64,000 bases of DNA from Rebecca billardiae RCC1528 (lineage: Eukaryota; Protista; Haptophyta), in assembly GCA_965240325.2 (NCBI GenBank), contig OZ251254.1, positions 124,001-188,000 of the forward strand. The letters run 5' to 3'. Shown in pieces: positions 4,801-58,270 of this stretch; positions within the stretch are counted from its first letter, which is position 1; each line of letters begins with the position of its first letter. Below the pieces are notes generated by a model that was not told the DNA's origin, did no database searches, and saw nothing but the letters and a program-made list of their open reading frames with translations. The translations under genes were made by a program, and so were the position numbers.

Positions 4801-5821
4801 CACCGCCACCCTCGCCGCCGCCACCACCACCGCCCTCGCCGCCGCCGCCGCCGCCGCCATCGCCGCCGCCGCCGCCGCCCAGCCCGCCGCCCCCGCCGCC
4901 GCCTTCACCGCCGCCGCCGCCGCCCTCGCCGCCGCCGCCGCCCTCGCCACCACCGCCCTCCTTGCCTCCGCCTCCGAGCCCGCCTCCGCCGCCCTCGCCG
5001 CCGCCCTCGCCACCCTCGCCGCCGCCACCCTCGCCCTCGCCACCACTCGACGCCGCTACCGCGAGCACGAGCAGCACCGGTGGCTCGGGCACGTCCGACG
5101 GCGACGACGACAACAGCGGCAGTGGCGACAGTGGCAGAGGTGAAGCCTCGCCGACGGCCGACGGCTCGGCGGTTGGGGTAGTCGGCCGCTCGCTTGTCAT
5201 CGGCATCGGCGTGGCGGCGGGCACTGCGGTGCTCATGCTGTTCTGCGTCGGCATGTGCGTCTTTGTCCGGTCGATGTACTGGGTGCGTCGTGCGTGCCCA
5301 CTCCGCGCGAATGCCTGCGCGCGCGGGCTCGAGCTCGCACTCACCTGATCCCCGCGCCCGCCCCCGCGCGCGCCGTGCATCCGCAGGCGGACAAGCGGAA
5401 AGAAGAGCTCGCGGCTGCGCGGATCCAGGCCGCCCTACGTGGCCACATGGTGCGCCAGAACTCGCGCCGCACGGACACCAGCGCGTCGCTGTACGCCCAG
5501 AACTCGATCTTAGGGGCCATGGCGAGCTCGCTGCTCGGAAACGGCGGTGCGCCGCCGCAGGAGCGGCTGCGGCCACCATCGTCGCCCGAGGCGACGTCGA
5601 GCAGGCGCGAGACGCCGCCGCAGCCGTCAGTCTTTGATAGCGTGGCCGACGCCTTCGCCACGCCCTTCCGCCTCTTCTCCGGCGCCGGAGGCTCGAGCGC
5701 CCCGAGCAGAGGCGCCGCGCGCCCTTACGCGTCGCCGTACGGCGGCGCCGGCGACATGAACACGATCATGCCGTCGCGCGCAGGCGCCCGCCTGCCGAGC
5801 GGCGCTGGCGCTGCCGTGTAG
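1..5821 (+). CDS. 3' part of a giant type-I membrane surface protein: extensin-like Ser-Pro repeats, ~30 GCTDxxAxNYxxxAxxDDGSC repeats, TM helix, cytoplasmic IQ motif; 5' end lies outside the window
   Basis: The frame of ORF 1041..5348 appears open from position 3. TM segment LVIGIGVAAGTAVLMLFCVGMCVFV. A GT-AG intron at 5283-5386 joins YW to ADKRKEELAAARIQAALRGHMVRQ (IQ motif). Stop at 5821. Confidence 0.8.
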
Positions 5822-5945
5822 CTAGTCGTAGTCGTGACGACACGCTGCTGCTGCGTTGACGATATGCAGCCGTGTGTGTATTGAATAATTGAATATATGT
5901 GATATACGACGTCTAATAACTGCTATCGCATCTGCTGATCAGATA

Positions 5946-7811
5946 CCAGGTGGCCGCACGCCCTGCCTGAACCGGCAGCCGCGCTTTAGGGAAACACCAT
6001 CCGGGGGGCCGCCTTTCACTTAAGGACACGCGGGTGGGTGATTACTCGGAACACGTGAACCATGTCCTTTTCGGACATACGCACACGCAAGATCTTGGGT
6101 ACGCAGTCATACTATCTGAATCCTGAGCGCCCACGAGCCCTCTTGGGTCCATGATAATCTGCCTCGTCAGCGAGCGTCCAAAAGCGAATCCGCCGAAAGT
6201 TTTTGATTGAAAGCGAGCGCTTTCTCCAGACGAGACGGATTCCATTCTGGTCCGCTCGTTCCGAACCAAAAGGTCATGGATGCCGTTCCACGGCGCGCGC
6301 GCGGTTGGGGCGGGCGGCGAAGCGGTTTTGTCGGTGGGGTACGGTACAGTCTGTGGCGGGCCGGCGGTGGGTGAGCTACCTATGCAGTTTAGTTGCGCAC
6401 GCTCGCTCGACGGCAGACCGGCCATAATCATGCAAGTAGCAATAGCATCAAGCTGTATGGGTCCGCCACTCCGCCAAGTCAAGAAGTGCTAGTCCCTACT
6501 TAGTTACGCCGGCGGCCGGCGGGCACATATCATTCACTAGAGACGGCACCCTCGACGCCACTATTGGCCTTCCGTACCCCGCCCGCCGCAAGCCCGCCGC
6601 ACATCCGTGTATGATCGTGAGCGTTTCAGACGACAAGTGGACTAGGGCAGCAGCTGGCAAAACGCAGCGTCGATGGCTCACACGATCGCGTACCCGGTGG
6701 TGGTCGGAGTGCCGGTTGGGTTCACCATGCCCAACGGTCTCCCTTCGGGCCAGTCGGCCCGCACGAATGCGCCGCGACCAGCGCCATTCGCCTCGCAACC
6801 ATCGGCAGCATCGTTGCGCAACCGGGGCGGTCGCATTTGCCGGCGCAACATCTACCTGACCATCTCTGCAGTGCCCAACAACCATCCTCTCCTTTCCAAC
6901 CTTCCTGCAGTGGCGACACACTTGCTGGCGCCATTGAGGGGCAAACAGAAGGAGTTCGTCGTCTGCAAGGAGCCGCACGAGCACCCCAACGACCCTAGCC
7001 GCGCTTGGCACTTCCACGCCGTCATCGGATCGGAGATGAAGACGGACTGCCTGGTCACAGCCTTTGACCTCCCCCTCCAGGGCTGGGGCACGCTGCGAGC
7101 GTACCACGAGCCGATGGGCCCGACGAAGCGTGACCTGGCGAAGTGCATCCACTACTGCCAGAAGGAGGGGCCGTCCAACTTCATCATCAGCGCCAACTGG
7201 GCAACCATCCCAGAGCCGCTCGACGTGTGCGGCGTCGACTGGGCGCGCGCGCTGCACGCAGCACAGTCTGCAGACGAGGCAGCGGACATCTTGCAGTGCG
7301 AGCACCCGTCGATCTACTACCGCTACGGCCATGCCGTGCTCGCCATGATCCGCCACCGACACGGCAGCGGCGTCACGCCGCGCTTCGCCATGAGCTCGTT
7401 TGCGCGACTGCCGCTCGACCTCTCTGATGGGATGGCTGTCGTGCTCGCAGGTGGATCCGGCCACGGCAAGACGGAGTTCGGGCTGTCGCACTTCGAGAAC
7501 CCTCTTCTCGTGTCCGAGATGGACGACCTGAAGGATTTGACGGCTCGCAACGACGGTATCGTCTTCGACGACATGGATTTCACGCACATGACGGCCAAGG
7601 CAGTGATCAAGATGCTCGACCCCAACTACGAGCGATCGGTGCACACGCGCTACACGAATGCCAAGATCCCCGCAGACATGCCACGCGTGTTCACGACAAA
7701 TCTGGCCATGCAGTACCCCTACGAGCACATCTTCCCGCCCGGTCGCAACCTCGAGCAGCAGCGTGCGCTCAACCGCCGCTTCAAAGTCGTGACGGTCGAT
7801 GCCGACCTCTT
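5946..7811 (+). mobile_element. Rep-encoding element, copy 1 (right end missing)
   Basis: Starts TA|CCAGGTGG; matches copy 3 up to gccgacctctt, then jumps to host sequence. Confidence 0.7.
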
Positions 7812-7842
7812 ACAGCGGCAGTGGCGACAGTGGCAGAGGTGA
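6673..7842 (+). CDS. rep: CRESS-DNA-virus-type Rep (HUH endonuclease + SF3 helicase), copy 1; C-terminal tail replaced by host-derived sequence
   Basis: Motif I IYLTIS, motif II WHFHAVI, motif III HYCQKEG, Walker A GGSGHGKT, Walker B IVFDDM, motif C FTTN, Arg finger ALNRRF. Confidence 0.93.
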   Translation: MAHTIAYPVVVGVPVGFTMPNGLPSGQSARTNAPRPAPFASQPSAASLRNRGGRICRRNIYLTISAVPNNHPLLSNLPAVATHLLAPLRGKQKEFVVCKEPHEHPNDPSRAWHFHAVIGSEMKTDCLVTAFDLPLQGWGTLRAYHEPMGPTKRDLAKCIHYCQKEGPSNFIISANWATIPEPLDVCGVDWARALHAAQSADEAADILQCEHPSIYYRYGHAVLAMIRHRHGSGVTPRFAMSSFARLPLDLSDGMAVVLAGGSGHGKTEFGLSHFENPLLVSEMDDLKDLTARNDGIVFDDMDFTHMTAKAVIKMLDPNYERSVHTRYTNAKIPADMPRVFTTNLAMQYPYEHIFPPGRNLEQQRALNRRFKVVTVDADLLQRQWRQWQR

Positions 7843-8134
7843 AGCCTCGCCGACGGCCGACGGCTCGGCGGTTGGGGTAGTCGGCCGCTCGCTTGTCATC
7901 GGCATCGGCGTGGCGGCGGGCACTGCGGTGCTCATGCTGTTCTGCGTCGGCATGTGCGTCTTTGTCCGGTCGATGTACTGGGTGCGTCGTGCGTGCCCAC
8001 TCCGCGCGAATGCCTGCGCGCGCGGGCTCGAGCTCGCACTCACCTGATCCCCGCGCCCGCCCCCGCGCGCGCCGTGCATCCGCAGGCGGACAAGCGGAAA
8101 GAAGAGCTCGCGGCTGCGCGGATCCAGGCCGCCC

Positions 8135-8283
<149 letters not shown>

Positions 8284-9157
8284 CAGCACCGGTGGCTCGG
8301 GCACGTCCGACGGCGACGACGACAACAGCGGCAGTGGCGACAGTGGCAGAGGTGAAGCCTCGCCGACGGCCGACGGCTCGGCGGTTGGGGTAGTCGGCCG
8401 CTCGCTTGTCATCGGCATCGGCGTGGCGGCGGGCACTGCGGTGCTCATGCTGTTCTGCGTCGGCATGTGCGTCTTTGTCCGGTCGATGTACTGGGTGCGT
8501 CGTGCGTGCCCACTCCGCGCGAATGCCTGCGCGCGCGGGCTCGAGCTCGCACTCACCTGATCCCCGCGCCCGCCCCCGCGCGCGCCGTGCATCCGCAGGC
8601 GGACAAGCGGAAAGAAGAGCTCGCGGCTGCGCGGATCCAGGCCGCCCTACGTGGCCACATGGTGCGCCAGAACTCGCGCCGCACGGACACCAGCGCGTCG
8701 CTGTACGCCCAGAACTCGATCTTAGGGGCCATGGCGAGCTCGCTGCTCGGAAACGGCGGTGCGCCGCCGCAGGAGCGGCTGCGGCCACCATCGTCGCCCG
8801 AGGCGACGTCGAGCAGGCGCGAGACGCCGCCGCAGCCGTCAGTCTTTGATAGCGTGGCCGACGCCTTCGCCACGCCCTTCCGCCTCTTCTCCGGCGCCGG
8901 AGGCTCGAGCGCCCCGAGCAGAGGCGCCGCGCGCCCTTACGCGTCGCCGTACGGCGGCGCCGGCGACATGAACACGATCATGCCGTCGCGCGCAGGCGCC
9001 CGCCTGCCGAGCGGCGCTGGCGCTGCCGTGTAGCTAGTCGTAGTCGTGACGACACGCTGCTGCTGCGTTGACGATATGCAGCCGTGTGTGTATTGAATAA
9101 TTGAATATATGTGATATACGACGTCTAATAACTGCTATCGCATCTGCTGATCAGATA

Positions 9158-11023
9158 CCAGGTGGCCGCACGCCCTGCCTGAACCGGCAGCCGCGCTTTA
9201 GGGAAACACCATCCGGGGGGCCGCCTTTCACTTAAGGACACGCGGGTGGGTGATTACTCGGAACACGTGAACCATGTCCTTTTCGGACATACGCACACGC
9301 AAGATCTTGGGTACGCAGTCATACTATCTGAATCCTGAGCGCCCACGAGCCCTCTTGGGTCCATGATAATCTGCCTCGTCAGCGAGCGTCCAAAAGCGAA
9401 TCCGCCGAAAGTTTTTGATTGAAAGCGAGCGCTTTCTCCAGACGAGACGGATTCCATTCTGGTCCGCTCGTTCCGAACCAAAAGGTCATGGATGCCGTTC
9501 CACGGCGCGCGCGCGGTTGGGGCGGGCGGCGAAGCGGTTTTGTCGGTGGGGTACGGTACAGTCTGTGGCGGGCCGGCGGTGGGTGAGCTACCTATGCAGT
9601 TTAGTTGCGCACGCTCGCTCGACGGCAGACCGGCCATAATCATGCAAGTAGCAATAGCATCAAGCTGTATGGGTCCGCCACTCCGCCAAGTCAAGAAGTG
9701 CTAGTCCCTACTTAGTTACGCCGGCGGCCGGCGGGCACATATCATTCACTAGAGACGGCACCCTCGACGCCACTATTGGCCTTCCGTACCCCGCCCGCCG
9801 CAAGCCCGCCGCACATCCGTGTATGATCGTGAGCGTTTCAGACGACAAGTGGACTAGGGCAGCAGCTGGCAAAACGCAGCGTCGATGGCTCACACGATCG
9901 CGTACCCGGTGGTGGTCGGAGTGCCGGTTGGGTTCACCATGCCCAACGGTCTCCCTTCGGGCCAGTCGGCCCGCACGAATGCGCCGCGACCAGCGCCATT
10001 CGCCTCGCAACCATCGGCAGCATCGTTGCGCAACCGGGGCGGTCGCATTTGCCGGCGCAACATCTACCTGACCATCTCTGCAGTGCCCAACAACCATCCT
10101 CTCCTTTCCAACCTTCCTGCAGTGGCGACACACTTGCTGGCGCCATTGAGGGGCAAACAGAAGGAGTTCGTCGTCTGCAAGGAGCCGCACGAGCACCCCA
10201 ACGACCCTAGCCGCGCTTGGCACTTCCACGCCGTCATCGGATCGGAGATGAAGACGGACTGCCTGGTCACAGCCTTTGACCTCCCCCTCCAGGGCTGGGG
10301 CACGCTGCGAGCGTACCACGAGCCGATGGGCCCGACGAAGCGTGACCTGGCGAAGTGCATCCACTACTGCCAGAAGGAGGGGCCGTCCAACTTCATCATC
10401 AGCGCCAACTGGGCAACCATCCCAGAGCCGCTCGACGTGTGCGGCGTCGACTGGGCGCGCGCGCTGCACGCAGCACAGTCTGCAGACGAGGCAGCGGACA
10501 TCTTGCAGTGCGAGCACCCGTCGATCTACTACCGCTACGGCCATGCCGTGCTCGCCATGATCCGCCACCGACACGGCAGCGGCGTCACGCCGCGCTTCGC
10601 CATGAGCTCGTTTGCGCGACTGCCGCTCGACCTCTCTGATGGGATGGCTGTCGTGCTCGCAGGTGGATCCGGCCACGGCAAGACGGAGTTCGGGCTGTCG
10701 CACTTCGAGAACCCTCTTCTCGTGTCCGAGATGGACGACCTGAAGGATTTGACGGCTCGCAACGACGGTATCGTCTTCGACGACATGGATTTCACGCACA
10801 TGACGGCCAAGGCAGTGATCAAGATGCTCGACCCCAACTACGAGCGATCGGTGCACACGCGCTACACGAATGCCAAGATCCCCGCAGACATGCCACGCGT
10901 GTTCACGACAAATCTGGCCATGCAGTACCCCTACGAGCACATCTTCCCGCCCGGTCGCAACCTCGAGCAGCAGCGTGCGCTCAACCGCCGCTTCAAAGTC
11001 GTGACGGTCGATGCCGACCTCTT
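9158..11023 (+). mobile_element. Rep-encoding element, copy 2 (right end missing)
   Basis: Matches copy 1 at offset 3212. Confidence 0.7.
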
Positions 11024-11054
11024 ACAGCGGCAGTGGCGACAGTGGCAGAGGTGA
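9885..11054 (+). CDS. rep: CRESS-type Rep, copy 2
   Basis: Translation identical to copy 1. Confidence 0.93.
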   Translation: MAHTIAYPVVVGVPVGFTMPNGLPSGQSARTNAPRPAPFASQPSAASLRNRGGRICRRNIYLTISAVPNNHPLLSNLPAVATHLLAPLRGKQKEFVVCKEPHEHPNDPSRAWHFHAVIGSEMKTDCLVTAFDLPLQGWGTLRAYHEPMGPTKRDLAKCIHYCQKEGPSNFIISANWATIPEPLDVCGVDWARALHAAQSADEAADILQCEHPSIYYRYGHAVLAMIRHRHGSGVTPRFAMSSFARLPLDLSDGMAVVLAGGSGHGKTEFGLSHFENPLLVSEMDDLKDLTARNDGIVFDDMDFTHMTAKAVIKMLDPNYERSVHTRYTNAKIPADMPRVFTTNLAMQYPYEHIFPPGRNLEQQRALNRRFKVVTVDADLLQRQWRQWQR

Positions 11055-11346
11055 AGCCTCGCCGACGGCCGACGGCTCGGCGGTTGGGGTAGTCGGCCGC
11101 TCGCTTGTCATCGGCATCGGCGTGGCGGCGGGCACTGCGGTGCTCATGCTGTTCTGCGTCGGCATGTGCGTCTTTGTCCGGTCGATGTACTGGGTGCGTC
11201 GTGCGTGCCCACTCCGCGCGAATGCCTGCGCGCGCGGGCTCGAGCTCGCACTCACCTGATCCCCGCGCCCGCCCCCGCGCGCGCCGTGCATCCGCAGGCG
11301 GACAAGCGGAAAGAAGAGCTCGCGGCTGCGCGGATCCAGGCCGCCC

Positions 11347-11561
<215 letters not shown>

Positions 11562-12435
11562 CAGCACCGGTGGCTCGGGCACGTCCGACGGCGACGACGA
11601 CAACAGCGGCAGTGGCGACAGTGGCAGAGGTGAAGCCTCGCCGACGGCCGACGGCTCGGCGGTTGGGGTAGTCGGCCGCTCGCTTGTCATCGGCATCGGC
11701 GTGGCGGCGGGCACTGCGGTGCTCATGCTGTTCTGCGTCGGCATGTGCGTCTTTGTCCGGTCGATGTACTGGGTGCGTCGTGCGTGCCCACTCCGCGCGA
11801 ATGCCTGCGCGCGCGGGCTCGAGCTCGCACTCACCTGATCCCCGCGCCCGCCCCCGCGCGCGCCGTGCATCCGCAGGCGGACAAGCGGAAAGAAGAGCTC
11901 GCGGCTGCGCGGATCCAGGCCGCCCTACGTGGCCACATGGTGCGCCAGAACTCGCGCCGCACGGACACCAGCGCGTCGCTGTACGCCCAGAACTCGATCT
12001 TAGGGGCCATGGCGAGCTCGCTGCTCGGAAACGGCGGTGCGCCGCCGCAGGAGCGGCTGCGGCCACCATCGTCGCCCGAGGCGACGTCGAGCAGGCGCGA
12101 GACGCCGCCGCAGCCGTCAGTCTTTGATAGCGTGGCCGACGCCTTCGCCACGCCCTTCCGCCTCTTCTCCGGCGCCGGAGGCTCGAGCGCCCCGAGCAGA
12201 GGCGCCGCGCGCCCTTACGCGTCGCCGTACGGCGGCGCCGGCGACATGAACACGATCATGCCGTCGCGCGCAGGCGCCCGCCTGCCGAGCGGCGCTGGCG
12301 CTGCCGTGTAGCTAGTCGTAGTCGTGACGACACGCTGCTGCTGCGTTGACGATATGCAGCCGTGTGTGTATTGAATAATTGAATATATGTGATATACGAC
12401 GTCTAATAACTGCTATCGCATCTGCTGATCAGATA

Positions 12436-14927
12436 CCAGGTGGCCGCACGCCCTGCCTGAACCGGCAGCCGCGCTTTAGGGAAACACCATCCGGGGGGCC
12501 GCCTTTCACTTAAGGACACGCGGGTGGGTGATTACTCGGAACACGTGAACCATGTCCTTTTCGGACATACGCACACGCAAGATCTTGGGTACGCAGTCAT
12601 ACTATCTGAATCCTGAGCGCCCACGAGCCCTCTTGGGTCCATGATAATCTGCCTCGTCAGCGAGCGTCCAAAAGCGAATCCGCCGAAAGTTTTTGATTGA
12701 AAGCGAGCGCTTTCTCCAGACGAGACGGATTCCATTCTGGTCCGCTCGTTCCGAACCAAAAGGTCATGGATGCCGTTCCACGGCGCGCGCGCGGTTGGGG
12801 CGGGCGGCGAAGCGGTTTTGTCGGTGGGGTACGGTACAGTCTGTGGCGGGCCGGCGGTGGGTGAGCTACCTATGCAGTTTAGTTGCGCACGCTCGCTCGA
12901 CGGCAGACCGGCCATAATCATGCAAGTAGCAATAGCATCAAGCTGTATGGGTCCGCCACTCCGCCAAGTCAAGAAGTGCTAGTCCCTACTTAGTTACGCC
13001 GGCGGCCGGCGGGCACATATCATTCACTAGAGACGGCACCCTCGACGCCACTATTGGCCTTCCGTACCCCGCCCGCCGCAAGCCCGCCGCACATCCGTGT
13101 ATGATCGTGAGCGTTTCAGACGACAAGTGGACTAGGGCAGCAGCTGGCAAAACGCAGCGTCGATGGCTCACACGATCGCGTACCCGGTGGTGGTCGGAGT
13201 GCCGGTTGGGTTCACCATGCCCAACGGTCTCCCTTCGGGCCAGTCGGCCCGCACGAATGCGCCGCGACCAGCGCCATTCGCCTCGCAACCATCGGCAGCA
13301 TCGTTGCGCAACCGGGGCGGTCGCATTTGCCGGCGCAACATCTACCTGACCATCTCTGCAGTGCCCAACAACCATCCTCTCCTTTCCAACCTTCCTGCAG
13401 TGGCGACACACTTGCTGGCGCCATTGAGGGGCAAACAGAAGGAGTTCGTCGTCTGCAAGGAGCCGCACGAGCACCCCAACGACCCTAGCCGCGCTTGGCA
13501 CTTCCACGCCGTCATCGGATCGGAGATGAAGACGGACTGCCTGGTCACAGCCTTTGACCTCCCCCTCCAGGGCTGGGGCACGCTGCGAGCGTACCACGAG
13601 CCGATGGGCCCGACGAAGCGTGACCTGGCGAAGTGCATCCACTACTGCCAGAAGGAGGGGCCGTCCAACTTCATCATCAGCGCCAACTGGGCAACCATCC
13701 CAGAGCCGCTCGACGTGTGCGGCGTCGACTGGGCGCGCGCGCTGCACGCAGCACAGTCTGCAGACGAGGCAGCGGACATCTTGCAGTGCGAGCACCCGTC
13801 GATCTACTACCGCTACGGCCATGCCGTGCTCGCCATGATCCGCCACCGACACGGCAGCGGCGTCACGCCGCGCTTCGCCATGAGCTCGTTTGCGCGACTG
13901 CCGCTCGACCTCTCTGATGGGATGGCTGTCGTGCTCGCAGGTGGATCCGGCCACGGCAAGACGGAGTTCGGGCTGTCGCACTTCGAGAACCCTCTTCTCG
14001 TGTCCGAGATGGACGACCTGAAGGATTTGACGGCTCGCAACGACGGTATCGTCTTCGACGACATGGATTTCACGCACATGACGGCCAAGGCCGTGATCAA
14101 GATGCTCGACCCCAACTACGAGCGATCGGTGCACACGCGCTACACGAATGCCAAGATCCCCGCAGACATGCCACGCGTGTTCACGACAAATCTGGCCATG
14201 CAGTACCCCTACGAGCACATCTTCCCGCCCGGTCGCAACCTCGAGCAGCAGCGTGCGCTCAACCGCCGCTTCAAAGTCGTGACGGTCGATGCCGACCTCT
14301 TTGCGGCGGCTCCCGCCGCCGGCGCGTCAGCGGCTGCCGTGCAGACGTGAGCCATCAGCAAGCGTGCGTCGGTGCATAGCCGCAAGATGCCCTGCTCAGC
14401 CCAGCTGAGCTGCTCAGACTGGCTTGACCCTCACGCTAGTGCCAGGCGGCCTGGCGGTGAGGCGCCGCGGCAGCGGGCCGCCTTTTCGTCAGCGGACTCA
14501 GCTGCGGCCCCGCCCTCTCTCGAGCGGCTTGCGGCGAGGGCGAGAACAGCGGTGAAACTGAAAACATGGGTTTCCTCGGGCCAATCAGGTTAGCGCAAAC
14601 ACACCGCGCAGCCTGAATGCGTTGAGAGGAGCTAGTACACCGACCCTGAATAGCCCTATGGACGAACTCGTTTTGCGGATGATGGAGGCCCCCAAGATTC
14701 CGCCGATGATTCGGCACGATTAGGGAAGCATGCAAGCGTCCAACCGGTACAACATAAGAAGCCGCTGAGAAGTCTAGGCTCAAAAATGACCATAAGCCCC
14801 AATCGCGGGGCGTACGGTTGCGTGTGTTCGACAACTTGACCCTGAAATCAATTGGAGACCGGGTAGAGCGGTCTAAGGCGCGGCCGGCGTCAGACCGCCG
14901 ACTCACGCACATGACTTCTCCACCTGG
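12436..14927 (+). mobile_element. Complete Rep-encoding element, copy 3 (2492 bp, short imperfect TIRs, TA on both sides)
   Basis: TA|CCAGGTGG at 12434-12443 and CCACCTGG|TA at 14920-14929. Shared subterminal CTGA..CCGG..CCGCGC(T/C)TTAG in inverted orientation. AT-rich flanks on both sides. Confidence 0.65.
13163..14350 (+). CDS. rep: CRESS-type Rep, copy 3 (full length, 395 aa)
   Basis: All HUH and SF3 motifs intact; native C-terminus FAAAPAAGASAAAVQT. Confidence 0.94.
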   Translation: MAHTIAYPVVVGVPVGFTMPNGLPSGQSARTNAPRPAPFASQPSAASLRNRGGRICRRNIYLTISAVPNNHPLLSNLPAVATHLLAPLRGKQKEFVVCKEPHEHPNDPSRAWHFHAVIGSEMKTDCLVTAFDLPLQGWGTLRAYHEPMGPTKRDLAKCIHYCQKEGPSNFIISANWATIPEPLDVCGVDWARALHAAQSADEAADILQCEHPSIYYRYGHAVLAMIRHRHGSGVTPRFAMSSFARLPLDLSDGMAVVLAGGSGHGKTEFGLSHFENPLLVSEMDDLKDLTARNDGIVFDDMDFTHMTAKAVIKMLDPNYERSVHTRYTNAKIPADMPRVFTTNLAMQYPYEHIFPPGRNLEQQRALNRRFKVVTVDADLFAAAPAAGASAAAVQT

Positions 14928-15825
14928 TAATATAGAATATGACGATGCGATGCTCATATATATATATATGAACAGCTGATATATGATGATGATTATTTAC
15001 ATCATATATATATATATATATTATTTACTCACAATATACCATGAAAAGTCGACGGGGTAGCCGTTACCGAATCGGAGGCGCTCCAATAGGAGGCGTAGGG
15101 TGTTCACCCGCCGTGAGCGCACTAATAAGCGATATGACGATGCGATGCTCATGGCGCACGCCCCCCCCGAAAGGTCTGAGCGTGAGCGAAAGCCGGGGGG
15201 GGCGGCGCACGTGCTCCGCAAAATCAAAAAAGAGGATGCGCGCAGGATTTGGGGGGATTTTTGTAGGTGGATTTAGGTGTGAAACCGAGCATTTGAGTCC
15301 ATTTCGCTGCTCATGATTGCGTTTGTATGGTGCGCCAGAACTCGCGCCGCACGGACACCAGCGCGTCGCTGTACGCCCAGAACTCGATCTTAGGGGCCAT
15401 GGCGAGCTCGCTGCTCGGAAACGGCGGTGCGCCGCCGCAGGAGCGGCTGCGGCCACCATCGTCGCCCGAGGCGACGTCGAGCAGGCGCGAGACGCCGCCG
15501 CAGCCGTCAGTCTTTGATAGCGTGGCCGACGCCTTCGCCACGCCCTTCCGCCTCTTCTCCGGCGCCGGAGGCTCGAGCGCCCCGAGCAGAGGCGCCGCGC
15601 GCCCTTACGCGTCGCCGTACGGCGGCGCCGGCGACATGAACACGATCATGCCGTCGCGCGCAGGCGCCCGCCTGCCGAGCGGCGCTGGCGCTGCCGTGTA
15701 GCTAGTCGTAGTCGTGACGACACGCTGCTGCTGCGTTGACGATATGCAGCCGTGTGTGTATTGAATAATTGAATATATGTGATATACGACGTCTAATAAC
15801 TGCTATCGCATCTGCTGATCAGATA

Positions 15826-18317
15826 CCAGGTGGCCGCACGCCCTGCCTGAACCGGCAGCCGCGCTTTAGGGAAACACCATCCGGGGGGCCGCCTTTCACT
15901 TAAGGACACGCGGGTGGGTGATTACTCGGAACACGTGAACCATGTCCTTTTCGGACATACGCACACGCAAGATCTTGGGTACGCAGTCATACTATCTGAA
16001 TCCTGAGCGCCCACGAGCCCTCTTGGGTCCATGATAATCTGCCTCGTCAGCGAGCGTCCAAAAGCGAATCCGCCGAAAGTTTTTGATTGAAAGCGAGCGC
16101 TTTCTCCAGACGAGACGGATTCCATTCTGGTCCGCTCGTTCCGAACCAAAAGGTCATGGATGCCGTTCCACGGCGCGCGCGCGGTTGGGGCGGGCGGCGA
16201 AGCGGTTTTGTCGGTGGGGTACGGTACAGTCTGTGGCGGGCCGGCGGTGGGTGAGCTACCTATGCAGTTTAGTTGCGCACGCTCGCTCGACGGCAGACCG
16301 GCCATAATCATGCAAGTAGCAATAGCATCAAGCTGTATGGGTCCGCCACTCCGCCAAGTCAAGAAGTGCTAGTCCCTACTTAGTTACGCCGGCGGCCGGC
16401 GGGCACATATCATTCACTAGAGACGGCACCCTCGACGCCACTATTGGCCTTCCGTACCCCGCCCGCCGCAAGCCCGCCGCACATCCGTGTATGATCGTGA
16501 GCGTTTCAGACGACAAGTGGACTAGGGCAGCAGCTGGCAAAACGCAGCGTCGATGGCTCACACGATCGCGTACCCGGTGGTGGTCGGAGTGCCGGTTGGG
16601 TTCACCATGCCCAACGGTCTCCCTTCGGGCCAGTCGGCCCGCACGAATGCGCCGCGACCAGCGCCATTCGCCTCGCAACCATCGGCAGCATCGTTGCGCA
16701 ACCGGGGCGGTCGCATTTGCCGGCGCAACATCTACCTGACCATCTCTGCAGTGCCCAACAACCATCCTCTCCTTTCCAACCTTCCTGCAGTGGCGACACA
16801 CTTGCTGGCGCCATTGAGGGGCAAACAGAAGGAGTTCGTCGTCTGCAAGGAGCCGCACGAGCACCCCAACGACCCTAGCCGCGCTTGGCACTTCCACGCC
16901 GTCATCGGATCGGAGATGAAGACGGACTGCCTGGTCACAGCCTTTGACCTCCCCCTCCAGGGCTGGGGCACGCTGCGAGCGTACCACGAGCCGATGGGCC
17001 CGACGAAGCGTGACCTGGCGAAGTGCATCCACTACTGCCAGAAGGAGGGGCCGTCCAACTTCATCATCAGCGCCAACTGGGCAACCATCCCAGAGCCGCT
17101 CGACGTGTGCGGCGTCGACTGGGCGCGCGCGCTGCACGCAGCACAGTCTGCAGACGAGGCAGCGGACATCTTGCAGTGCGAGCACCCGTCGATCTACTAC
17201 CGCTACGGCCATGCCGTGCTCGCCATGATCCGCCACCGACACGGCAGCGGCGTCACGCCGCGCTTCGCCATGAGCTCGTTTGCGCGACTGCCGCTCGACC
17301 TCTCTGATGGGATGGCTGTCGTGCTCGCAGGTGGATCCGGCCACGGCAAGACGGAGTTCGGGCTGTCGCACTTCGAGAACCCTCTTCTCGTGTCCGAGAT
17401 GGACGACCTGAAGGATTTGACGGCTCGCAACGACGGTATCGTCTTCGACGACATGGATTTCACGCACATGACGGCCAAGGCCGTGATCAAGATGCTCGAC
17501 CCCAACTACGAGCGATCGGTGCACACGCGCTACACGAATGCCAAGATCCCCGCAGACATGCCACGCGTGTTCACGACAAATCTGGCCATGCAGTACCCCT
17601 ACGAGCACATCTTCCCGCCCGGTCGCAACCTCGAGCAGCAGCGTGCGCTCAACCGCCGCTTCAAAGTCGTGACGGTCGATGCCGACCTCTTTGCGGCGGC
17701 TCCCGCCGCCGGCGCGTCAGCGGCTGCCGTGCAGACGTGAGCCATCAGCAAGCGTGCGTCGGTGCATAGCCGCAAGATGCCCTGCTCAGCCCAGCTGAGC
17801 TGCTCAGACTGGCTTGACCCTCACGCTAGTGCCAGGCGGCCTGGCGGTGAGGCGCCGCGGCAGCGGGCCGCCTTTTCGTCAGCGGACTCAGCTGCGGCCC
17901 CGCCCTCTCTCGAGCGGCTTGCGGCGAGGGCGAGAACAGCGGTGAAACTGAAAACATGGGTTTCCTCGGGCCAATCAGGTTAGCGCAAACACACCGCGCA
18001 GCCTGAATGCGTTGAGAGGAGCTAGTACACCGACCCTGAATAGCCCTATGGACGAACTCGTTTTGCGGATGATGGAGGCCCCCAAGATTCCGCCGATGAT
18101 TCGGCACGATTAGGGAAGCATGCAAGCGTCCAACCGGTACAACATAAGAAGCCGCTGAGAAGTCTAGGCTCAAAAATGACCATAAGCCCCAATCGCGGGG
18201 CGTACGGTTGCGTGTGTTCGACAACTTGACCCTGAAATCAATTGGAGACCGGGTAGAGCGGTCTAAGGCGCGGCCGGCGTCAGACCGCCGACTCACGCAC
18301 ATGACTTCTCCACCTGG
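15826..18317 (+). mobile_element. Complete Rep-encoding element, copy 4
   Basis: Matches copy 3 at offset 3390. Confidence 0.65.
16553..17740 (+). CDS. rep: CRESS-type Rep, copy 4 (full length)
   Basis: Translation identical to copy 3. Confidence 0.94.
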   Translation: MAHTIAYPVVVGVPVGFTMPNGLPSGQSARTNAPRPAPFASQPSAASLRNRGGRICRRNIYLTISAVPNNHPLLSNLPAVATHLLAPLRGKQKEFVVCKEPHEHPNDPSRAWHFHAVIGSEMKTDCLVTAFDLPLQGWGTLRAYHEPMGPTKRDLAKCIHYCQKEGPSNFIISANWATIPEPLDVCGVDWARALHAAQSADEAADILQCEHPSIYYRYGHAVLAMIRHRHGSGVTPRFAMSSFARLPLDLSDGMAVVLAGGSGHGKTEFGLSHFENPLLVSEMDDLKDLTARNDGIVFDDMDFTHMTAKAVIKMLDPNYERSVHTRYTNAKIPADMPRVFTTNLAMQYPYEHIFPPGRNLEQQRALNRRFKVVTVDADLFAAAPAAGASAAAVQT

Positions 18318-18612
18318 TAATATAGAATATGACGATGCGATGCTCATATATATATATATGAACAGCTGATATATGATGATGATTATTTACATCATATATA
18401 TATATATATTATTTACTCACAATATACCATGAAAAGTCGACGGGGTAGCCGTTACCGAATCGGAGGCGCTCCAATAGGAGGCGTAGGGTGTTCACCCGCC
18501 GTGAGCGCACTAATAAGCGATATGACGATGCGATGCTCATGGCGCACGCCCCCCCCGAAAGGTCTGAGCGTGAGCGAAAGCCGGGGGGGGGCGGCGCACG
18601 TGCTCCGCAAAA

Positions 18613-19178
18613 TGTTGAGCTGACGCGGCCTGGGGCGCGCATCTCAGCAGATGGCGTCGCCGCTGGGACGTCAGGGCCGGCGCCGCACCAGGCGGGCCGG
18701 CGTCATCAGCTACGGAGCAGTGGCTGGCTGGCGGCGCGCGCGCGCGGCGCGCGCGGCGGCAGGAGCGCGGACGCGGCAGCGCGGACGCGGAGCGACACGG
18801 ACGCGGCGCGTGCGCGGGCGGTACGGCCCGGCGCAGCGCGACACGGTGACGTCGCACGGGCATGGCCCGGACGCCATCGTGGGAGTCCATCCGGATTTCC
18901 ACTTTCGGAAAAGTGGGAATCCGGCTGAGGGTGGACGGACGAGGACGTCCGGGAGTTACGTCGGGACGGGCGGTTTTCGGGAAGGTAACGCATTCCCCGG
19001 AGCCGGCCGCGACGTGGTCACCCCGCGACCAAAAGGTCGGCGGGAGGTTAGCTTGTCTTCGTAAAAGAGCGAAGGGAAGGAGGTTGCCTCTCGTGGTCAA
19101 CATTGACGACGCGCCCGAGGACGCGCCGGTGAGCTTTTAGCAGGGCTCGGGACGCTCGGAGCTCGCGTTTACCCAATA
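18613..19178 (+). repeat. 5' LTR
   Basis: TGTTGAGCTG...TTTACCCAATA; appears identical to the 3' LTR. Confidence 0.95.
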
Positions 19179-21799
19179 TGCATGCAGCGATCGGGAGGGA
19201 TCGTACGCGCGGCGCTTTCTCATCGATCGCGCCGATGGGCACGAGCGGCCGGTACTACGGCTCGGTGGACGTTGGGATGCTGAACGACAAGGGCAATCAG
19301 CAGCGCTGGCTCGCGCAATCGGCGAGCAGGCTGGCGGCGCTACCGGCGGGGCAAGGTGCTACGATGTCCGCACTGAACGGCATCATCGTGACGCACGGCC
19401 CGAACGCGGAGCACCGCATCAACACGCTCGAGGAGTACAACTCGACGTGGGAGACATTCAACCCATCCGCGGCGAAGATGATCAAGGTCAGTGCCGAGCG
19501 GATGGACCTGGCGCGTGAGAACTACGCGCTGCAGCAGCGGCTGCTCGACCATCGCCACGAGCACGAGCGCCGCGAGCACGCCGAGCGCCGGGCCGCGGCG
19601 GAACGCGCGGCGGCGGCGGCGGCGGGGGCGAGGCAGGCGCCAAGCTACGCGCAGGCTGCCTCGGCGGGCGCGGGGAGTGGTTTAGCCACTCCGGGCGGCC
19701 CGACGGCGACCGGACCGGGTTCAGGTCCGGCGGCGGGCGGCGGATCCGGAATTTCTCCGGGTCCGGCGGCCGGCACACCCAGTCCGGGTGTGGGCACAGG
19801 CGGCGCTGCAGGTGCGCCGGCTGGGACTGACGGCGCGACGCCTATGGGCGGTGCCGGCGTCGGCGCGGCGCCTACGGGCGGCGCCGGCGGGATGGGTGGC
19901 GCGGCGCCCGCGGGCGGCGCTGCCGTGACGCTCGATCCGCGCGCGCGTGAGCTCTACCGCCGCGAGCGCGAGACCGAGGATCAGATGCATGAGCGGCAGG
20001 CGAGCGAGCACGCCATGCTGGACATCAAACTCCGACAGAGCGTGTTGGAGGCAGCGCCGGACGGCGACGAGGCGGACCCCGCCAAGTACGCCGGGGCGCA
20101 GTACGAGAAAGGGACGGCTTTCTTACGCACCGAGCTGCGGTCGTGGGTGACGGAGGCTGCGTGGCAGCACATCAACCGCCTCATGGAGACGCAGCCGGAG
20201 GTGCAGGAGGAGCGCGCGCGCCGGGGCGCACTTACGCCGGGGCGCGAGTTTCTGTACCTGTGGAAGACGATCCTGCGCATGCGCAAGCCCGACGACATGC
20301 GGAAGTACATGTCGGTGCGGGCACGCTGGCATCGGACGGTCCTGCCGGACTGCGGCAAGGACGGCGTCGGCGCCCTCGAGCTCTTCCAGGTGCTACAGCA
20401 CAACCACGTGCTGCTGCAGGAGCTGAGTGACGCAGCGCCAGCGGCGGAGATGCTTGCGCGGCTCATCGAGTTCATTCCGTCGGTGGGCGCGGGCATCGAG
20501 ATGCGGACGCGGTACGAGTCGAAGGACTACAGGACCGTGACGAACTTCGACGTGCAGGAGCTCGTGCACGAGCTCAACGGCAAGTTCGAGGACTGGGACT
20601 TCTCCAAGGGCAAGCGGGTTGACCGCGGCGGCCCTGGGCGCCCAGGGGCGGGTGGCCGCACGCCAGGAGGCGGCGGCGCTACCCGCGCGCACCCAATCGA
20701 CGGGCTCCGCCTGGCGCAGGCGGCGGCGGCGTCGGCGGGTGGCGGCGGCGGCGACACGAAGTCGCCGGCTGGCCGTGGTGGCGGCGGCGGAGGTCGTGGC
20801 GGTGGCGGCGGCGGCACTGGCCGCGGCGCCGGCCGCGGAGGCCAGGACGACTCCGACGACGCGCACGGGCCGCGCTGCTACAAGTGCGGCGCCGTGGGGC
20901 ATATCAAGCGTTACTGCCCGCAGGTGACGCAGGCTGATCGCGACTCGAACGCTGGCGATGACGCGGCGTCGACGCGGTCGGATCGCAGCCGTGGCTCACA
21001 TCGGAGCGGCGGTGGCGGTGGCGGCGGCGGTGGCGGGGGCAGCACCCGCGCCGTGGTCGGTAATGGCAACGGCGGCGGCACGGTCCGCACGCAGGTCGCG
21101 TTCGCTCCCGAGCAGGGGGACGAGCCAGACGGCGCCGTTGGTGGCGACGGTGACGCTGACGCCGGAGACGGCGGCGGCGCCGGCGCCAGACTCGGCTTGG
21201 CGCCTATTGGCGCGGCTATCGGCGGCAGGGCGCAGCGCGACGAGGACATCGAGATCGTCGCGGCGCGGGCGGCCGAGGCACGCGGGGCGCCGCCGGAGGA
21301 CAACACGCGGGCGTTGGTGTTTGACACTGGCGCACGGAAGAACATCGCCATGGCCGAGGATTTGACGAATCTTACCCCGGTGGACGGCGCATGTCAGATC
21401 GAGTGGGGGAACGGTGCGCGGGAGCGGGTCACTCACCGCGGGACCCTGGTGGTCAAGCTTGCGGCGGACGACGACAGCGACAAGGTCCTCACGCTCGAGA
21501 TCGAGGCGTGGGCGTCGCGGCGCGTCACGGCGCCGCTGCTGTCGGTCGAGCACTGCGCAGACGCAGGCATCGAGTTCCACTACTCGCAGCGCGGCAACAC
21601 TGCGGACTTTACGGCGCTGGGAGGCGGCGTCGTGCAGCTGCCGCGCGATTCCACGCTGCGCGCCGAGATCGTACGGCGCCAGGTGGGGCCAGACGTCGGC
21701 GATGCGCCGGCGGAGGCGCGCGCACGGCGCAGGGCGCCAGTGCGGCGCGTGGGCGCGGGGCGGGGGCGCATTGGCGCTGCGCCGCCCCCAAACGCCTAA
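19178..21799 (+). CDS. gag: Copia Gag-protease
   Basis: Zinc knuckle CYKCGAVGHIKRYC; aspartic protease motif LVFDTGA. Confidence 0.9.
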   Translation: MHAAIGRDRTRGAFSSIAPMGTSGRYYGSVDVGMLNDKGNQQRWLAQSASRLAALPAGQGATMSALNGIIVTHGPNAEHRINTLEEYNSTWETFNPSAAKMIKVSAERMDLARENYALQQRLLDHRHEHERREHAERRAAAERAAAAAAGARQAPSYAQAASAGAGSGLATPGGPTATGPGSGPAAGGGSGISPGPAAGTPSPGVGTGGAAGAPAGTDGATPMGGAGVGAAPTGGAGGMGGAAPAGGAAVTLDPRARELYRRERETEDQMHERQASEHAMLDIKLRQSVLEAAPDGDEADPAKYAGAQYEKGTAFLRTELRSWVTEAAWQHINRLMETQPEVQEERARRGALTPGREFLYLWKTILRMRKPDDMRKYMSVRARWHRTVLPDCGKDGVGALELFQVLQHNHVLLQELSDAAPAAEMLARLIEFIPSVGAGIEMRTRYESKDYRTVTNFDVQELVHELNGKFEDWDFSKGKRVDRGGPGRPGAGGRTPGGGGATRAHPIDGLRLAQAAAASAGGGGGDTKSPAGRGGGGGGRGGGGGGTGRGAGRGGQDDSDDAHGPRCYKCGAVGHIKRYCPQVTQADRDSNAGDDAASTRSDRSRGSHRSGGGGGGGGGGGSTRAVVGNGNGGGTVRTQVAFAPEQGDEPDGAVGGDGDADAGDGGGAGARLGLAPIGAAIGGRAQRDEDIEIVAARAAEARGAPPEDNTRALVFDTGARKNIAMAEDLTNLTPVDGACQIEWGNGARERVTHRGTLVVKLAADDDSDKVLTLEIEAWASRRVTAPLLSVEHCADAGIEFHYSQRGNTADFTALGGGVVQLPRDSTLRAEIVRRQVGPDVGDAPAEARARRRAPVRRVGAGRGRIGAAPPPNA

Positions 21800-24700
21800 G
21801 CCCGGAACCCGCGCAGGTGCGAACCACAAACACTACGGAGGCGGCGCGAGGCGCTGATCCGGCGTGGTTGCGCACTTGGTCGGTTCGAACGGGCACCAAT
21901 GACCAACGTCTACTCGAGCGCACGCGACGCGTGGCCGAGGGGATGGAGGGGGCGAACGCGCGGCGTGAGTCGCTCGACGAGCAGTCGGCGGCGGGCATGA
22001 CGCGGCGGCCGTTCGCGGACGCAATGCCGACGGCGCACTACCCTGGGCAGGTGACGCACGTCGACATCTTCTCCATGGCACGCATCGACTTACCAGTTGG
22101 GGCCGATGGCGCGCGTGGAGGGTATCCTCATGGGATCATATTCATCGATGGGCATTCACGTCGATGGCAAGTGTACGCGCTACGCAGCTTGGATGACGCC
22201 GAGGTTGGTCGGGCATTCCGCTGGTACGCGCAGTTGCTTGGAACAGGGGCCATGCACATGTCGCATTGGGTCCTGGCGTCGGGGTGTACTATGGCGCGAC
22301 GCCATATTCACACCGACGGTGGCTCGACGTTGCTGAGTACGTACGTCGAGGGTGAGCTGGCGAAGCTTGGGTTCTCGTCGACGGTCACGTCGGCGCCCGA
22401 CTCGCCGAGCTCGAATGGCGTGGCGGAACGCGCTATCCGCACGCTGAAGTCGAGACTGCGCGCCACGGTCGTTGCGCGTGGAGTCTCGCGGGTCGATTGG
22501 CACTACGCGGCGTGGCACGCATGCGCGTCGCGCAATCGACTGGCGTCACGTGGTATCATTCGTGACGATGGAGACATCGAGTGGCTCACGCCGGATGAGC
22601 TGTTCTTTGGCAAACGTCCGACGTGGAAGCATCACGTGGCGTTTGGCGCGCGCTGCCGCGTGCTGATGCTGGGCGCACGGCGCAATGCATTGGGGCAGCT
22701 CAAGCAGCGCGCACTACCCGGACGTGTCTATCTCTGGGGTGGGCACGGCGTGCAGTGGCGCGGTACATGGCGCTACGTGCTTGGGTACGTATGTCGTTTA
22801 GACGACGGACGTCTCGTTCACTCACGTGACGTACGCATCGACGAGACCGACCTGGTCGAGGGGGGGCACTCGTCGCTGGGCGCACCTGACGGTGGCGCGT
22901 ACGTGGGTGATGGTGACGGCGCCGCAGTAAGCGGCGGACATCGTCCAGTCGGCGGTGATGCCGACGGTGAGGACGAGGACGGTGACGGCGGCGAGACGCC
23001 AGCCGACGCCGGGAATGACGACGCGACAGAGTTCGACGTCGGGTACGACGACGACGCAGATGCGTCAACGTCGGGGCGCGGGCGCAGCAGCGTGGACGCG
23101 GGACAACGCGGGTGCAGCAGCGCGGGCGCACAGCCGTCGACGCCGACGCCGCAGGGCGGGCGTGGCGGGGCAGGCGCGTCGATGACGCAGCCGGGTCGGC
23201 AGGATCAGATACCGCCGACGGAATCACGGCGCGGGGCCGCAGCAGGTGCTGGCGGGCCGCCGCGCGGCGCAGACGGTGACGACGGCGTGATCGAGGACGC
23301 GCCGCCGCCCGGTCTGGATATGGGACACGATCCGCTTCGCAGGGATCGGACGTCACGCCGACGGCCGCAGCTGCTTACTGCCGTCGTCAGCGCCGCGTCG
23401 GTGTTCCAGAAGATCAACGTGAAGGTGCCGACGAACTATCGCGAGGCGATGCGGTCGGCGGAGGCGCCCCAGTGGCAGGGCGCCATGCTCGAGCACTTGG
23501 AAGGTCACAAGTTGCTCGGCACCTCGGAAGAGGTGGTGGTTCCGGAGGGCACGCGGGTGTTGCCGAGCCAATGGGTCTTTGACGTCAAGTCGAACCCGGA
23601 GGGCGAGGTGACGCGCTTCAAGGCGCGGTCGGTGCTACTGGGGAACCTACAGCGGCCGGGGATCGACTTTCAGGAGGTCTTTGCTCCGACGATCCGGCCG
23701 GAACAAGTGCGACTACTCGTTGCGATCGCCGCTCAGCAGGCGGGCGCGAGGGTCGACTTGGGAGCAGCGTCGGTTGCGGCGCTGGGCATACTGTCGAAGG
23801 GCGACGTCAAGGACGCGTACCTCAACTCGGAGTTGAAGCCGGATGAGCGGCCTCTCTTCTCATTCCCGCCGGGCTACGTGCCGAGCACGCAGGCGCCGCC
23901 GGGGTACAAAGTCGTGGGCCGGAGCCTCAAGGCGTATCCGGGTCTACGCCAGTCTGGGCGCGCGTGGCATCGCACGCACCGCACCCAGCTGCTCGCGCGC
24001 GGCTTCTCGGAGTGTCCGAGTGCGCCGTGCATCTACGTCAAGGAGTCGGCGCCGGGCGAGTTCATCATCGCGGGCGGCTTTGTCGACGACTTGCTGTTTC
24101 TCAACCTGACGCGCGACGCGCGCGCGGTGGAGAAGCTGGCGGCTGACCTGAAGGAGCATTACGAGATCAAGCTGAGTGAGCGGCTCGATAAGTTCCTGGG
24201 CGCCGTGTTTGAAGTTCATGACGACGGCATCCTGATGCATCTGGGGCCGTACGTCGAGAGCGTGCTTCAGCGGTTCGGTTTGAACGCGAGCACGCCGGCG
24301 CGCACGCCGGAGCCGGCGGCGCGGGCGCAGCTGAGCGACGACGACGAGGCGTTGCTGCAGCGCGCGGAGATTGAGAACTACCAGGCGATGGTGGGATGTC
24401 TCATGTTTGCGATGGTCACGGCGCGGCCGGACATCGCGCACGCGGTGAACATGCTGACGCGACGCATGTCACGTCCGCGGGCGGTGGATCTGGTAAGTGC
24501 GAAGCGCGTGCTGCGCTACTTACGCGGATGCCCGCGATTGGGAATCTTGTTCAAGTTTGCGACAGATTCCGAGCACCCCGACCTACTTGCTTTCGCTGAC
24601 TCCGATTGGGCAAGCAATCCGGTGGAGACCAAGGGCAGGTCGACGGGTGGATACATTGTGTTCTACAATGGTGCGCCGGTGTCGTGGCACAGCGGGCTGC

Positions 24701-25071
24701 AAGGTACAGTCTCGCTGAGCTCGACGGAGGCGGAGTACGTCGCGCTGAGCGATTGCTGCCGCGAGGTGAGCTACTTGCGGAGCATACTCGAGTCCATGCG
24801 GCAGCCGCCGCGGGGCGCGACGGAGGTGCGAGAGGACAACAAGGGGGCAATCGACCTCGTGGAGAATCCTGTGCACCACAAGCGCTCGAAGCACATCGAG
24901 ATCAAGCATCACTATGTGCGTGACGCGCAGGAGGGTGGCAAGGTGAAGGTGGTCAAGGTACACACCTCACTCAACCACTCTGACATCATGACGAAGGCGA
25001 CGGACGGTGCGACGTTCAAGCGGCACGTCGACGCCATCATGGTGGACCGACACCCGACGCGCGCGCGGTAA
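21787..25071 (+). CDS. pol: Copia Pol (integrase, RT, RNase H) in the -1 frame relative to gag
   Basis: IN: HVDIF / HTDGG / NGVAER. RT: DVKDAYL, GLRQSGRAW, FVDDLL. RNase H: FADSDWA, STEAEY, EDNKGA, KHIEIKHH. Confidence 0.92.
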   Translation, partial: PKRLSPEPAQVRTTNTTEAARGADPAWLRTWSVRTGTNDQRLLERTRRVAEGMEGANARRESLDEQSAAGMTRRPFADAMPTAHYPGQVTHVDIFSMARIDLPVGADGARGGYPHGIIFIDGHSRRWQVYALRSLDDAEVGRAFRWYAQLLGTGAMHMSHWVLASGCTMARRHIHTDGGSTLLSTYVEGELAKLGFSSTVTSAPDSPSSNGVAERAIRTLKSRLRATVVARGVSRVDWHYAAWHACASRNRLASRGIIRDDGDIEWLTPDELFFGKRPTWKHHVAFGARCRVLMLGARRNALGQLKQRALPGRVYLWGGHGVQWRGTWRYVLGYVCRLDDGRLVHSRDVRIDETDLVEGGHSSLGAPDGGAYVGDGDGAAVSGGHRPVGGDADGEDEDGDGGETPADAGNDDATEFDVGYDDDADASTSGRGRSSVDAGQRGCSSAGAQPSTPTPQGGRGGAGASMTQPGRQDQIPPTESRRGAAAGAGGPPRGADGDDGVIEDAPPPGLDMGHDPLRRDRTSRRRPQLLTAVVSAASVFQKINVKVPTNYREAMRSAEAPQWQGAMLEHLEGHKLLGTSEEVVVPEGTRVLPSQWVFDVKSNPEGEVTRFKARSVLLGNLQRPGIDFQEVFAPTIRPEQVRLLVAIAAQQAGARVDLGAASVAALGILSKGDVKDAYLNSELKPDERPLFSFPPGYVPSTQAPPGYKVVGRSLKAYPGLRQSGRAWHRTHRTQLLARGFSECPSAPCIYVKESAPGEFIIAGGFVDDLLFLNLTRDARAVEKLAADLKEHYEIKLSERLDKFLGAVFEVHDDGILMHLGPYVESVLQRFGLNASTPARTPEPAARAQLSDDDEALLQRAEIENYQAMVGCLMFAMVTARPDIAHAVNMLTRRMSRPRAVDLVSAKRVLRYLRGCPRLGILFKFATDSEHPDLLAFADSDWASNPVETKGRSTGGYIVFYNGAPVSWHSGLQGTVSLSSTEAEYVALSDCCREVSYLRSILESMRQPPRGATEVREDNKGAIDLVENPVHHKRSKHIEIKHHYVRDAQEGGKVKVVKVHTSLNHSDIMTKATDGATFKRHVDAIMVDRHPTRAR

Positions 25072-25107
25072 GCGGCGCAGCTCGCGGCTATGGCTGTCGA
25101 GGGGGGG

Positions 25108-45223: not shown

Positions 45224-48770
<3,547 letters not shown>

Positions 48771-56245: not shown

Positions 56246-58270
<2,025 letters not shown>

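Follow-up and report, generated by a model that had tools for sequence, protein, structure and literature searches.

A Rep-only element with inverted ends in a haptophyte genome has relatives in marine metagenomes and may be an undescribed kind of transposon

Background

Replication-initiator proteins (Reps) of small DNA viruses are usually found in genomes as dead fossils. Here, a compact element that has clearly reached many sites in the DNA of abundant ocean plankton carries an intact Rep as its only gene. The element, of 2496 bp, lies in a 64,000-nucleotide stretch (the window) of contig OZ251254.1 from the haptophyte Rebecca billardiae RCC1528. Its gene is predicted to encode an HUH nuclease joined to a superfamily 3 (SF3) helicase, and the element is bordered by TA and by short inverted repeats (Table 1).

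Four groups of Rep transposon are recognized in the paper describing Replitrons, none of which has an SF3 helicase or inverted ends (Craig 2023, PMC10288648). Replitrons resemble the element described here in that they are multi-copy elements of eukaryotes (algae and protists) whose sole protein is a single-tyrosine HUH Rep linked to Reps of the CRESS (circular Rep-encoding single-stranded DNA) type (PMC10288648). However, the Replitron protein has no helicase, its motif is mostly HUQ and the element carries short direct terminal repeats, whereas the element here has a full SF3 helicase and inverted ends. Helitrons are also transposons of eukaryotes in which an HUH Rep is fused to a helicase, but their Rep has two tyrosines, the helicase is of the Pif1-like SF1B type and there are neither inverted ends nor site duplications (PMC10288648). 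In contrast, the Rep described here has one tyrosine and an SF3 helicase, and the ends are inverted with TA or TTAA borders.

The geminivirus-like transposon of the truffle Tuber melanosporum is a multi-copy element with a geminivirus-type Rep and 37-bp terminal inverted repeats (Liu et al. 2011, PMC3198968). It differs in having two transposase open reading frames (ORFs), an interrupted Rep and no observed site duplication (PMC3198968), while the elements here are Rep-only, have an intact Rep and occur in eight lineages. CRESS DNA viruses and their endogenous copies share the Rep architecture; they provide the best structural match (9pqq), and the nuclease is closest to that of geminivirus Rep. 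Unlike them, the elements here have no capsid gene, no circular form that was seen and no internal origin stem-loop, and they have defined ends and many insertion sites; the copy in the window is flanked by host DNA. Parvoviruses such as adeno-associated virus (AAV) also place an HUH and SF3 Rep on a linear unit with inverted terminal repeats, and AAV2 Rep68 is among the top fold matches, but parvoviruses have long self-folding end palindromes and a capsid gene, whereas the ends here measure 10 to 50 bp and hold small palindromes at most.

Non-autonomous mariner and piggyBac elements are likewise bordered on both sides by TA or TTAA, and the CCAGGTG or CCYT start of their repeats is matched in some lineages described here. 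In contrast to such elements, no lineage encodes a transposase, several depart from the end rules and all have the same one conserved gene. Teratorn is an example of a virus living on the ends of a transposon (PMC5601938).

Results and discussion

An intact Rep between inverted ends

The Rep is an intact HUH and SF3 protein of the geminivirus-like type. Direct reading of the protein revealed the HUH motif (HFH), a single-tyrosine YxxK motif, Walker A (GKT), Walker B (FDD) and motif C. A structure was modelled with AlphaFold from an alignment of the window Rep with 25 relatives; the mean predicted local distance difference test score (pLDDT) was 86.6, with residues 1-50 poorly modelled. In Foldseek searches the top match of the full-length model was the Rep double hexamer of a CRESS virus (9pqq, E 2e-9), and AAV2 Rep68 came next. 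The nuclease domain resembled the Rep-DNA structure of tomato yellow leaf curl virus (template modelling (TM) score 0.73, on target) and the ATPase resembled Rep of porcine circovirus 2 (TM 0.62). The motifs and the fold matches confirm the first-pass annotation, made from the letters of the window, which had called an intact HUH and SF3 Rep.

The family profile matched geminivirus Rep nuclease domains in the PDB (E 1e-13), and 12 of the 26 Rep family members matched Pfam Gemini_AL1. It was family profiles and the fold search only that named the Rep, because searches of Pfam, PHROGs and PDB sequences with the window Rep as a single sequence gave no match. An exact-protein look-up of the window Rep and a tblastn search against bacterial plasmids also gave no match.

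Neither a capsid nor a transposase ORF was found inside the element. Its other ORFs had no Pfam match and, outside Rep, no tblastx similarity to relatives, so the earlier claim that capsid-like and DDE ORFs are lacking stands. In the non-coding parts of the element there was no perfect stem of at least 7 bp with a loop of 4 to 15 nucleotides, and Rfam and tRNA scans were empty.

The inverted, TA-bordered ends proposed earlier are present in the letters. Their 10-bp match, however, is by itself at chance level: four inverted 10-mer pairs bracket the Rep ORF, and at least one such pair arose in 74% of composition-preserving shuffles. The boundary in the window is backed instead by a second, collinear inverted block and by relatives. 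This block corresponds to the second shared subterminal motif that had been noticed before, and its CTTTAG-ending left copy resembles the terminal repeats of two metagenomic lineages (P0002 and P0003). Past the first 8 bp the two ends of the element match each other poorly. The core of a CRESS nick site, which had been read on the minus strand at the right end, did not hold up: half its letters come from the flank, the left end is without it and no relative has it.

An alternative inner boundary is possible at an 11-bp inverted pair (13074/14526), which is of GC-rich low complexity and lacks TA. A nested insertion was unsupported, as the non-coding arms have no other copy in the window.

Table 1. 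Positions of the element, its neighbours in the window and related insertions in metagenomic contigs
Feature	Position or loci	Strand	Details
Element copy 3, full length	12434..14929	+	2496 bp, TA to TA; identical to copy 4
Left end	12434..12443	+	TA plus 8-bp terminal inverted repeat, TA+CCAGGTGG
Right end	14920..14929	-	same 10 letters as left end; reverse complement of TA+CCAGGTGG
Left subterminal inverted block	12463..12479	+	pairs with 14873..14889
Right subterminal inverted block	14873..14889	-	14/17 match with 12463..12479
Rep gene copy 3, intact	13163..14350	+	395 aa; ORF list, motif reading, structure model
HUH nuclease domain	13325..13687	+	about residues 55-175; motif II HFH, motif III YCQK with single Tyr
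SF3 helicase domain	13916..14290	+	about residues 252-376; Walker A, Walker B, motif C
Tandem array, four units	5067..18613		spacings 3212, 3278 and 3390 bp; self-BLAST 99.9-100% identity, repeats
Element copy 1, 3'-shortened	5944..7842	+	left end to Rep stop; ORF 6673-7842, 389 aa
Element copy 2	9156..11054	+	identical to copy 1; Rep ORF 9885-11054
Element copy 4, full length	15824..18319	+	Rep ORF 16553-17740
Left flank repeated with element	11937..12433	+	end of host reading frame (stop 12311) and 122 bp AT-rich
Right flank repeated with element	14930..15326	+	AT-rich, 397 bp
Ty1/copia long terminal repeat (LTR) retrotransposon	18613..25675	+	zf-CCHC, RVT_2; in right flank of copy 4, a neighbour and not part of the element
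Lineage P0002	L002-L005		block 1730 bp; inverted ends 32 bp; border TA
Lineage P0003	L006-L009		block about 1644 bp; inverted ends 16 bp; border TA
Lineage P0034	L034-L041		block about 1842 bp; inverted ends about 50 bp, 24-nt palindrome in each; border TA
Lineage P0186	L025-L033		block 1828 bp; inverted ends 13 bp; border TTAA; at least six different left flanks
Lineage P0042	L017-L024		block 2119 bp; inverted ends 17/20 matching; border TTAA
Lineage P0040	L044-L048		block about 1711 bp; inverted ends 15 bp; border TTAA
Lineage P0001	L001, L042		about 1869 bp between repeats (right boundary not fixed); inverted ends 27 bp; without TA

Relatives in marine metagenomes are Rep-only insertions

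A Rep profile was searched against 1.8 billion representative proteins and matched 2521 of them, 296 at E ≤ 1e-30. About 25 matches were full length, and many others covered the helicase only; a scan of metagenome loci gave helicase-only additions and nothing more. The relatives lie on short contigs, mostly from Tara Oceans and other marine or estuarine samples. The catalytic residues are invariant across the 26 members of the Rep family, which share 23 to 53% identity.

Seven lineages were compared by their contigs, and flanks were judged one side at a time because short-read assembly had shuffled the flank pairs. In all seven, contigs share a Rep-only block that is 98 to 100% identical, has sharp ends and inverted repeats and is followed by differing flanks. 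At least two different flanks were present on at least one side in every lineage, and six of the seven have a TA or TTAA border. All copies in P0042, P0040 and P0186 have TTAA at both ends. At one P0186 locus (L025) the filled site is accompanied, 2.4 kb downstream, by the same two flanks joined over a single TTAA, an empty site. In P0034 the same right flank is found again in an adjacent tandem unit, immediately past a TA. The ends of sister Reps are related, as in P0003 and P0034 and in P0042 and P0186. The blocks of the seven lineages contain no second gene or transposase, nor is there room for a second gene. Thus, the close homologues proved to be Rep-only blocks with inverted ends, different flanks and one empty site, and not capsid-encoding viruses, the outcome that the first-pass annotation had named as fatal to its proposal.

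On the strength of these comparisons, we conclude that the unit in the window is one insertion from a family of small (1.6 to 2.5 kb), capsid-less, Rep-only mobile elements with inverted ends. Codon changes between P0002 copies were about 5:6 (synonymous to non-synonymous) or fewer per pair, and as these copies were fetched by exact protein identity, the ratio of non-synonymous to synonymous rates (dN/dS) is uninformative.

Several features of individual loci were observed. On L043 a single ORF (269-2296; P0067, 675 aa) fuses a DnaJ (J) domain to a full-length Rep of the family, with no clear inverted ends on the 2.5-kb contig. L044 carries a solo 269-bp P0040 left end (221-489), with the same TTAA and repeat start as the full copy 328 bp downstream and a different flank. 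Inside the P0042 element, upstream of Rep, about nine tandem 9-bp units (L017, 40-121; also L019, 368-440) are iteron-like, and their copy number varies by contig. On L004, 123-bp inverted repeats (203-324 and 2339-2461; 92% identical) bound a unit of about 2.26 kb without long ORFs, which ends 30 bp from the Rep element.

Mobility may depend on Rep itself or on transposases in trans

We tentatively favour, without considering it established, a reading in which Rep is the element's own enzyme of mobility and replication. Rep would recognize the inverted ends and nick each strand at the bordering palindromic TA or TTAA. Symmetric nicks in both strands of a palindromic target would give the observed duplication, and the element would spread via a DNA intermediate linked to Rep. 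Joining of the two ends in a circular form would yield a palindrome with TA or TTAA at its centre, comparable to the stem of a replication origin opened at its nick site; an origin at the element ends would fit with the lack of an internal stem-loop in the window element. Rep is the sole gene present, is intact and well folded in the model, and keeps its catalytic residues throughout the divergence of the family. The large size of the family, the seven lineages of inverted-repeat-bounded blocks with differing flanks and the related ends of sister Reps also speak for this reading.

A number of points weigh against a Rep-driven mechanism. We know of no single-tyrosine (Y1) HUH/SF3 Rep that transposes, and duplications of TA and TTAA are characteristic of mariner and piggyBac. 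The ends of P0042 conform to the piggyBac rule, with TTAA and a repeat starting CCYT. Conspicuous subterminal hairpins were confined to P0034 (z -3.7) and the right end of the window element (z -2.3). The window holds a single insertion event, so that its own boundaries rest on analogy with relatives, and in the short-read contigs the same left flank was seen with different right flanks, as assembly-shuffled pairs. Neither an end-to-end arrangement nor a circular form was present in the contig sets compared. The four known groups of Rep transposon have no inverted ends and no site duplication (PMC10288648). Finally, the first seven letters of the window repeat (CCAGGTG) are those with which the mariner repeats of Mos1 and Mboumar start (PMC3419177, PMC7018970).

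A serious alternative is only a little less probable: the elements may be non-autonomous cut-and-paste elements with mariner- or piggyBac-type ends that are moved by host transposases encoded elsewhere, with Rep as retained cargo that perhaps copies excised DNA and does not integrate it. The TA on both sides of the window element, its mariner-like TA and CCAGGTG start, and the single TTAA at the empty site of L025, where the filled site has two, agree with this. The piggyBac rules are a TTAA duplication and repeats of 12 to 19 bp starting CCYT or C[C/A/T][C/A/T]. P0042 and P0040 ends both read TTAA followed by CCC; by the start rule P0042 is in agreement, P0040 is so in part (CCCC, 11 nt) and P0186 deviates (GGTG). 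There are also precedents, in the truffle Rep-carrying transposon with its transposase ORFs and in Teratorn, a fusion of a virus with piggyBac (PMC5601938).

However, a transposase was found in none of the eight lineages, no large ORF in the window has a DDE domain, and the 64-kb window has no transposase-encoding partner with the ends of the window element. A merely passive cargo is expected to decay, and an intact Rep with every catalytic residue kept across deep divergence is unexpected for one. Movement by host transposases would also require that one Rep family had ends from two unrelated superfamilies. The ends of P0186 (TTAA and GG), P0002, P0003 and P0034 (TA and TC) and P0001 (without TA) fit neither the mariner nor the piggyBac rule, and the poor mutual match of the window ends past their first 8 bp is accompanied by no match there to printed mariner repeats. 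The first-pass annotation had offered a Rep-driven transposon or integrating plasmid and a Tc1/mariner-type non-autonomous element carrying a viral rep; both remain live mechanisms, while a one-off integration, which it named as a refuting outcome, has been weakened.

On a bolder reading, the family may add a fifth group, independent of the four known ones, to the Rep (HUH) transposons, and would be the first among them to have an SF3 helicase, with terminal inverted repeats and borders of TA or TTAA; it would derive from a geminivirus-like replicon whose origin palindrome became both ends, and would be active and widespread in marine protists. The family is probably undescribed, and may represent an undescribed kind of transposon. 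In the literature searched, which did not extend to Repbase or subscription journals, no account was found of Rep-only elements that have inverted ends. The earlier suggestion of an undescribed system stands to this extent, but has to be qualified since a transposon with a geminivirus-type Rep has already been reported from truffle (PMC3198968).

Movement by Rep would be a new transposition chemistry for eukaryotes, and the element would represent an extant intermediate linking circular Rep replicons, parvovirus-like linear replicons and transposons. Movement by host transposases would mean that a viral replication gene has repeatedly been paired with the ends of transposons, as in Teratorn but on a smaller scale. 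In both cases, the family bears on how viruses, plasmids and transposons interconvert, a question that can be addressed with existing plankton sequence data.

The copies in the window are a segmental duplication

The element had been taken as solitary. In fact, its left end occurs four times (5944, 9156, 12434 and 15824) and its right end twice, with four Rep ORFs in tandem. Each unit of the array is built of a 3' segment of a host gene, the element and a flank. Copies 3 and 4 are identical across all 2496 bp. In copies 1 and 2, Rep is broken once each by a 3' truncation with a foreign tail, which also removed the 3' part of the element; there are no stops or frameshifts in these two Reps. The truncation is followed by a duplicated host segment and a (TG)n tract. 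The tracts, perfect (TG)71 at 8136-8278 and (TG)104 at 11348-11556, lie exactly at the junctions after the two truncated units, and the differing spacing of the units is explained by the differing lengths of the tracts.

Host sequence makes up about 0.5 to 0.9 kb of each unit, and the stop of the host frame, given for the third unit in Table 1, is at 5821 in the first. The insertion sits 122 bp past this stop in a GC-rich eukaryotic genome. The flanks are AT-rich host sequence, as had been described; they are not unique host DNA, however, but part of the repeat unit. At the junction of units 3 and 4, two host flanks are joined with microhomology of about 1 bp. In the fourth unit, the flank is interrupted by the copia element, resumes at 25674-25781 and gives way to true downstream host sequence after 25781. 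This young copia element has LTRs identical over the 300 nt compared and a site duplication of 4 to 5 bp, and it is inserted in the flank of the fourth unit only.

The array is a young segmental duplication of one insertion, and neither several transpositions nor a concatemer of a replicon, because the repeat units contain host coding sequence and their junctions are host-to-host. The order of events was insertion, then duplication with flanks into four tandem units, then landing of copia in the last unit.

The four copies could in part be an assembly artefact, an over-expanded repeat with one or two true copies, given that copies are 99.9 to 100% identical and junctions have long (TG)n tracts. 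This is unlikely, as two unit types, distinct junctions, (TG)n tracts of differing length and copia in one unit only are more structure than simple mis-expansion would give; the question bears on copy number only and not on the nature of the element.

That a circular virus or plasmid encoding Rep integrated only once, possibly as a concatemer, with the 10-bp match due to chance and the array made of rolling-circle multimers, agrees with the chance-level match, the tandem copies and the circovirus- or geminivirus-type Pfam domains of more distant homologues on contigs of about 2 kb, but is very improbable: the units hold host coding sequence and host-to-host junctions, a capsid ORF is lacking, the nearest relatives are not circles but insertions bounded by inverted repeats and differing in their flanks (none of three related contigs tested had the terminal overlap of circularity), and the ends of four lineages are absent from a viral contig collection.

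Taken together, the observations of the first-pass annotation were partly confirmed and its interpretation partly supported.

Other features of the window

The first 5348 nucleotides of the window form a very GC-rich (up to 84%) long open frame with proline-rich tandem repeats of 36, 72 and 108 bp and cysteine-bearing repeats of 78 bp. The frame has no Pfam match, and it is the 3' end of this frame that was duplicated in the array as the host segment. An AT-rich, self-complementary repeat of about 75 bp is present at 14954-15026, 18344-18416 and 27268-27343, and is possibly a miniature element; the copy 12 kb away is 95% identical. Near the Rep element this repeat is bracketed by 30-bp direct repeats (14928-14957 and 15123-15152).

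Other genes in the window encode a DHHC palmitoyltransferase, MINDY-3/4, a homeodomain protein and RCC1, and the DNA is therefore eukaryotic and nuclear. Matches to the RCC1 gene reached only 50%, and stramenopile and cryptophyte sequences were among them. The homeodomain-bearing open frame (45984-49055, minus strand) contains a (GCT)151 tract at 46111-46565. Two near-perfect arrays of 10-bp units (56246-56632 and 57763-58167; about 39 and 40 copies) flank about 1.1 kb, and each is the reverse complement of the other.

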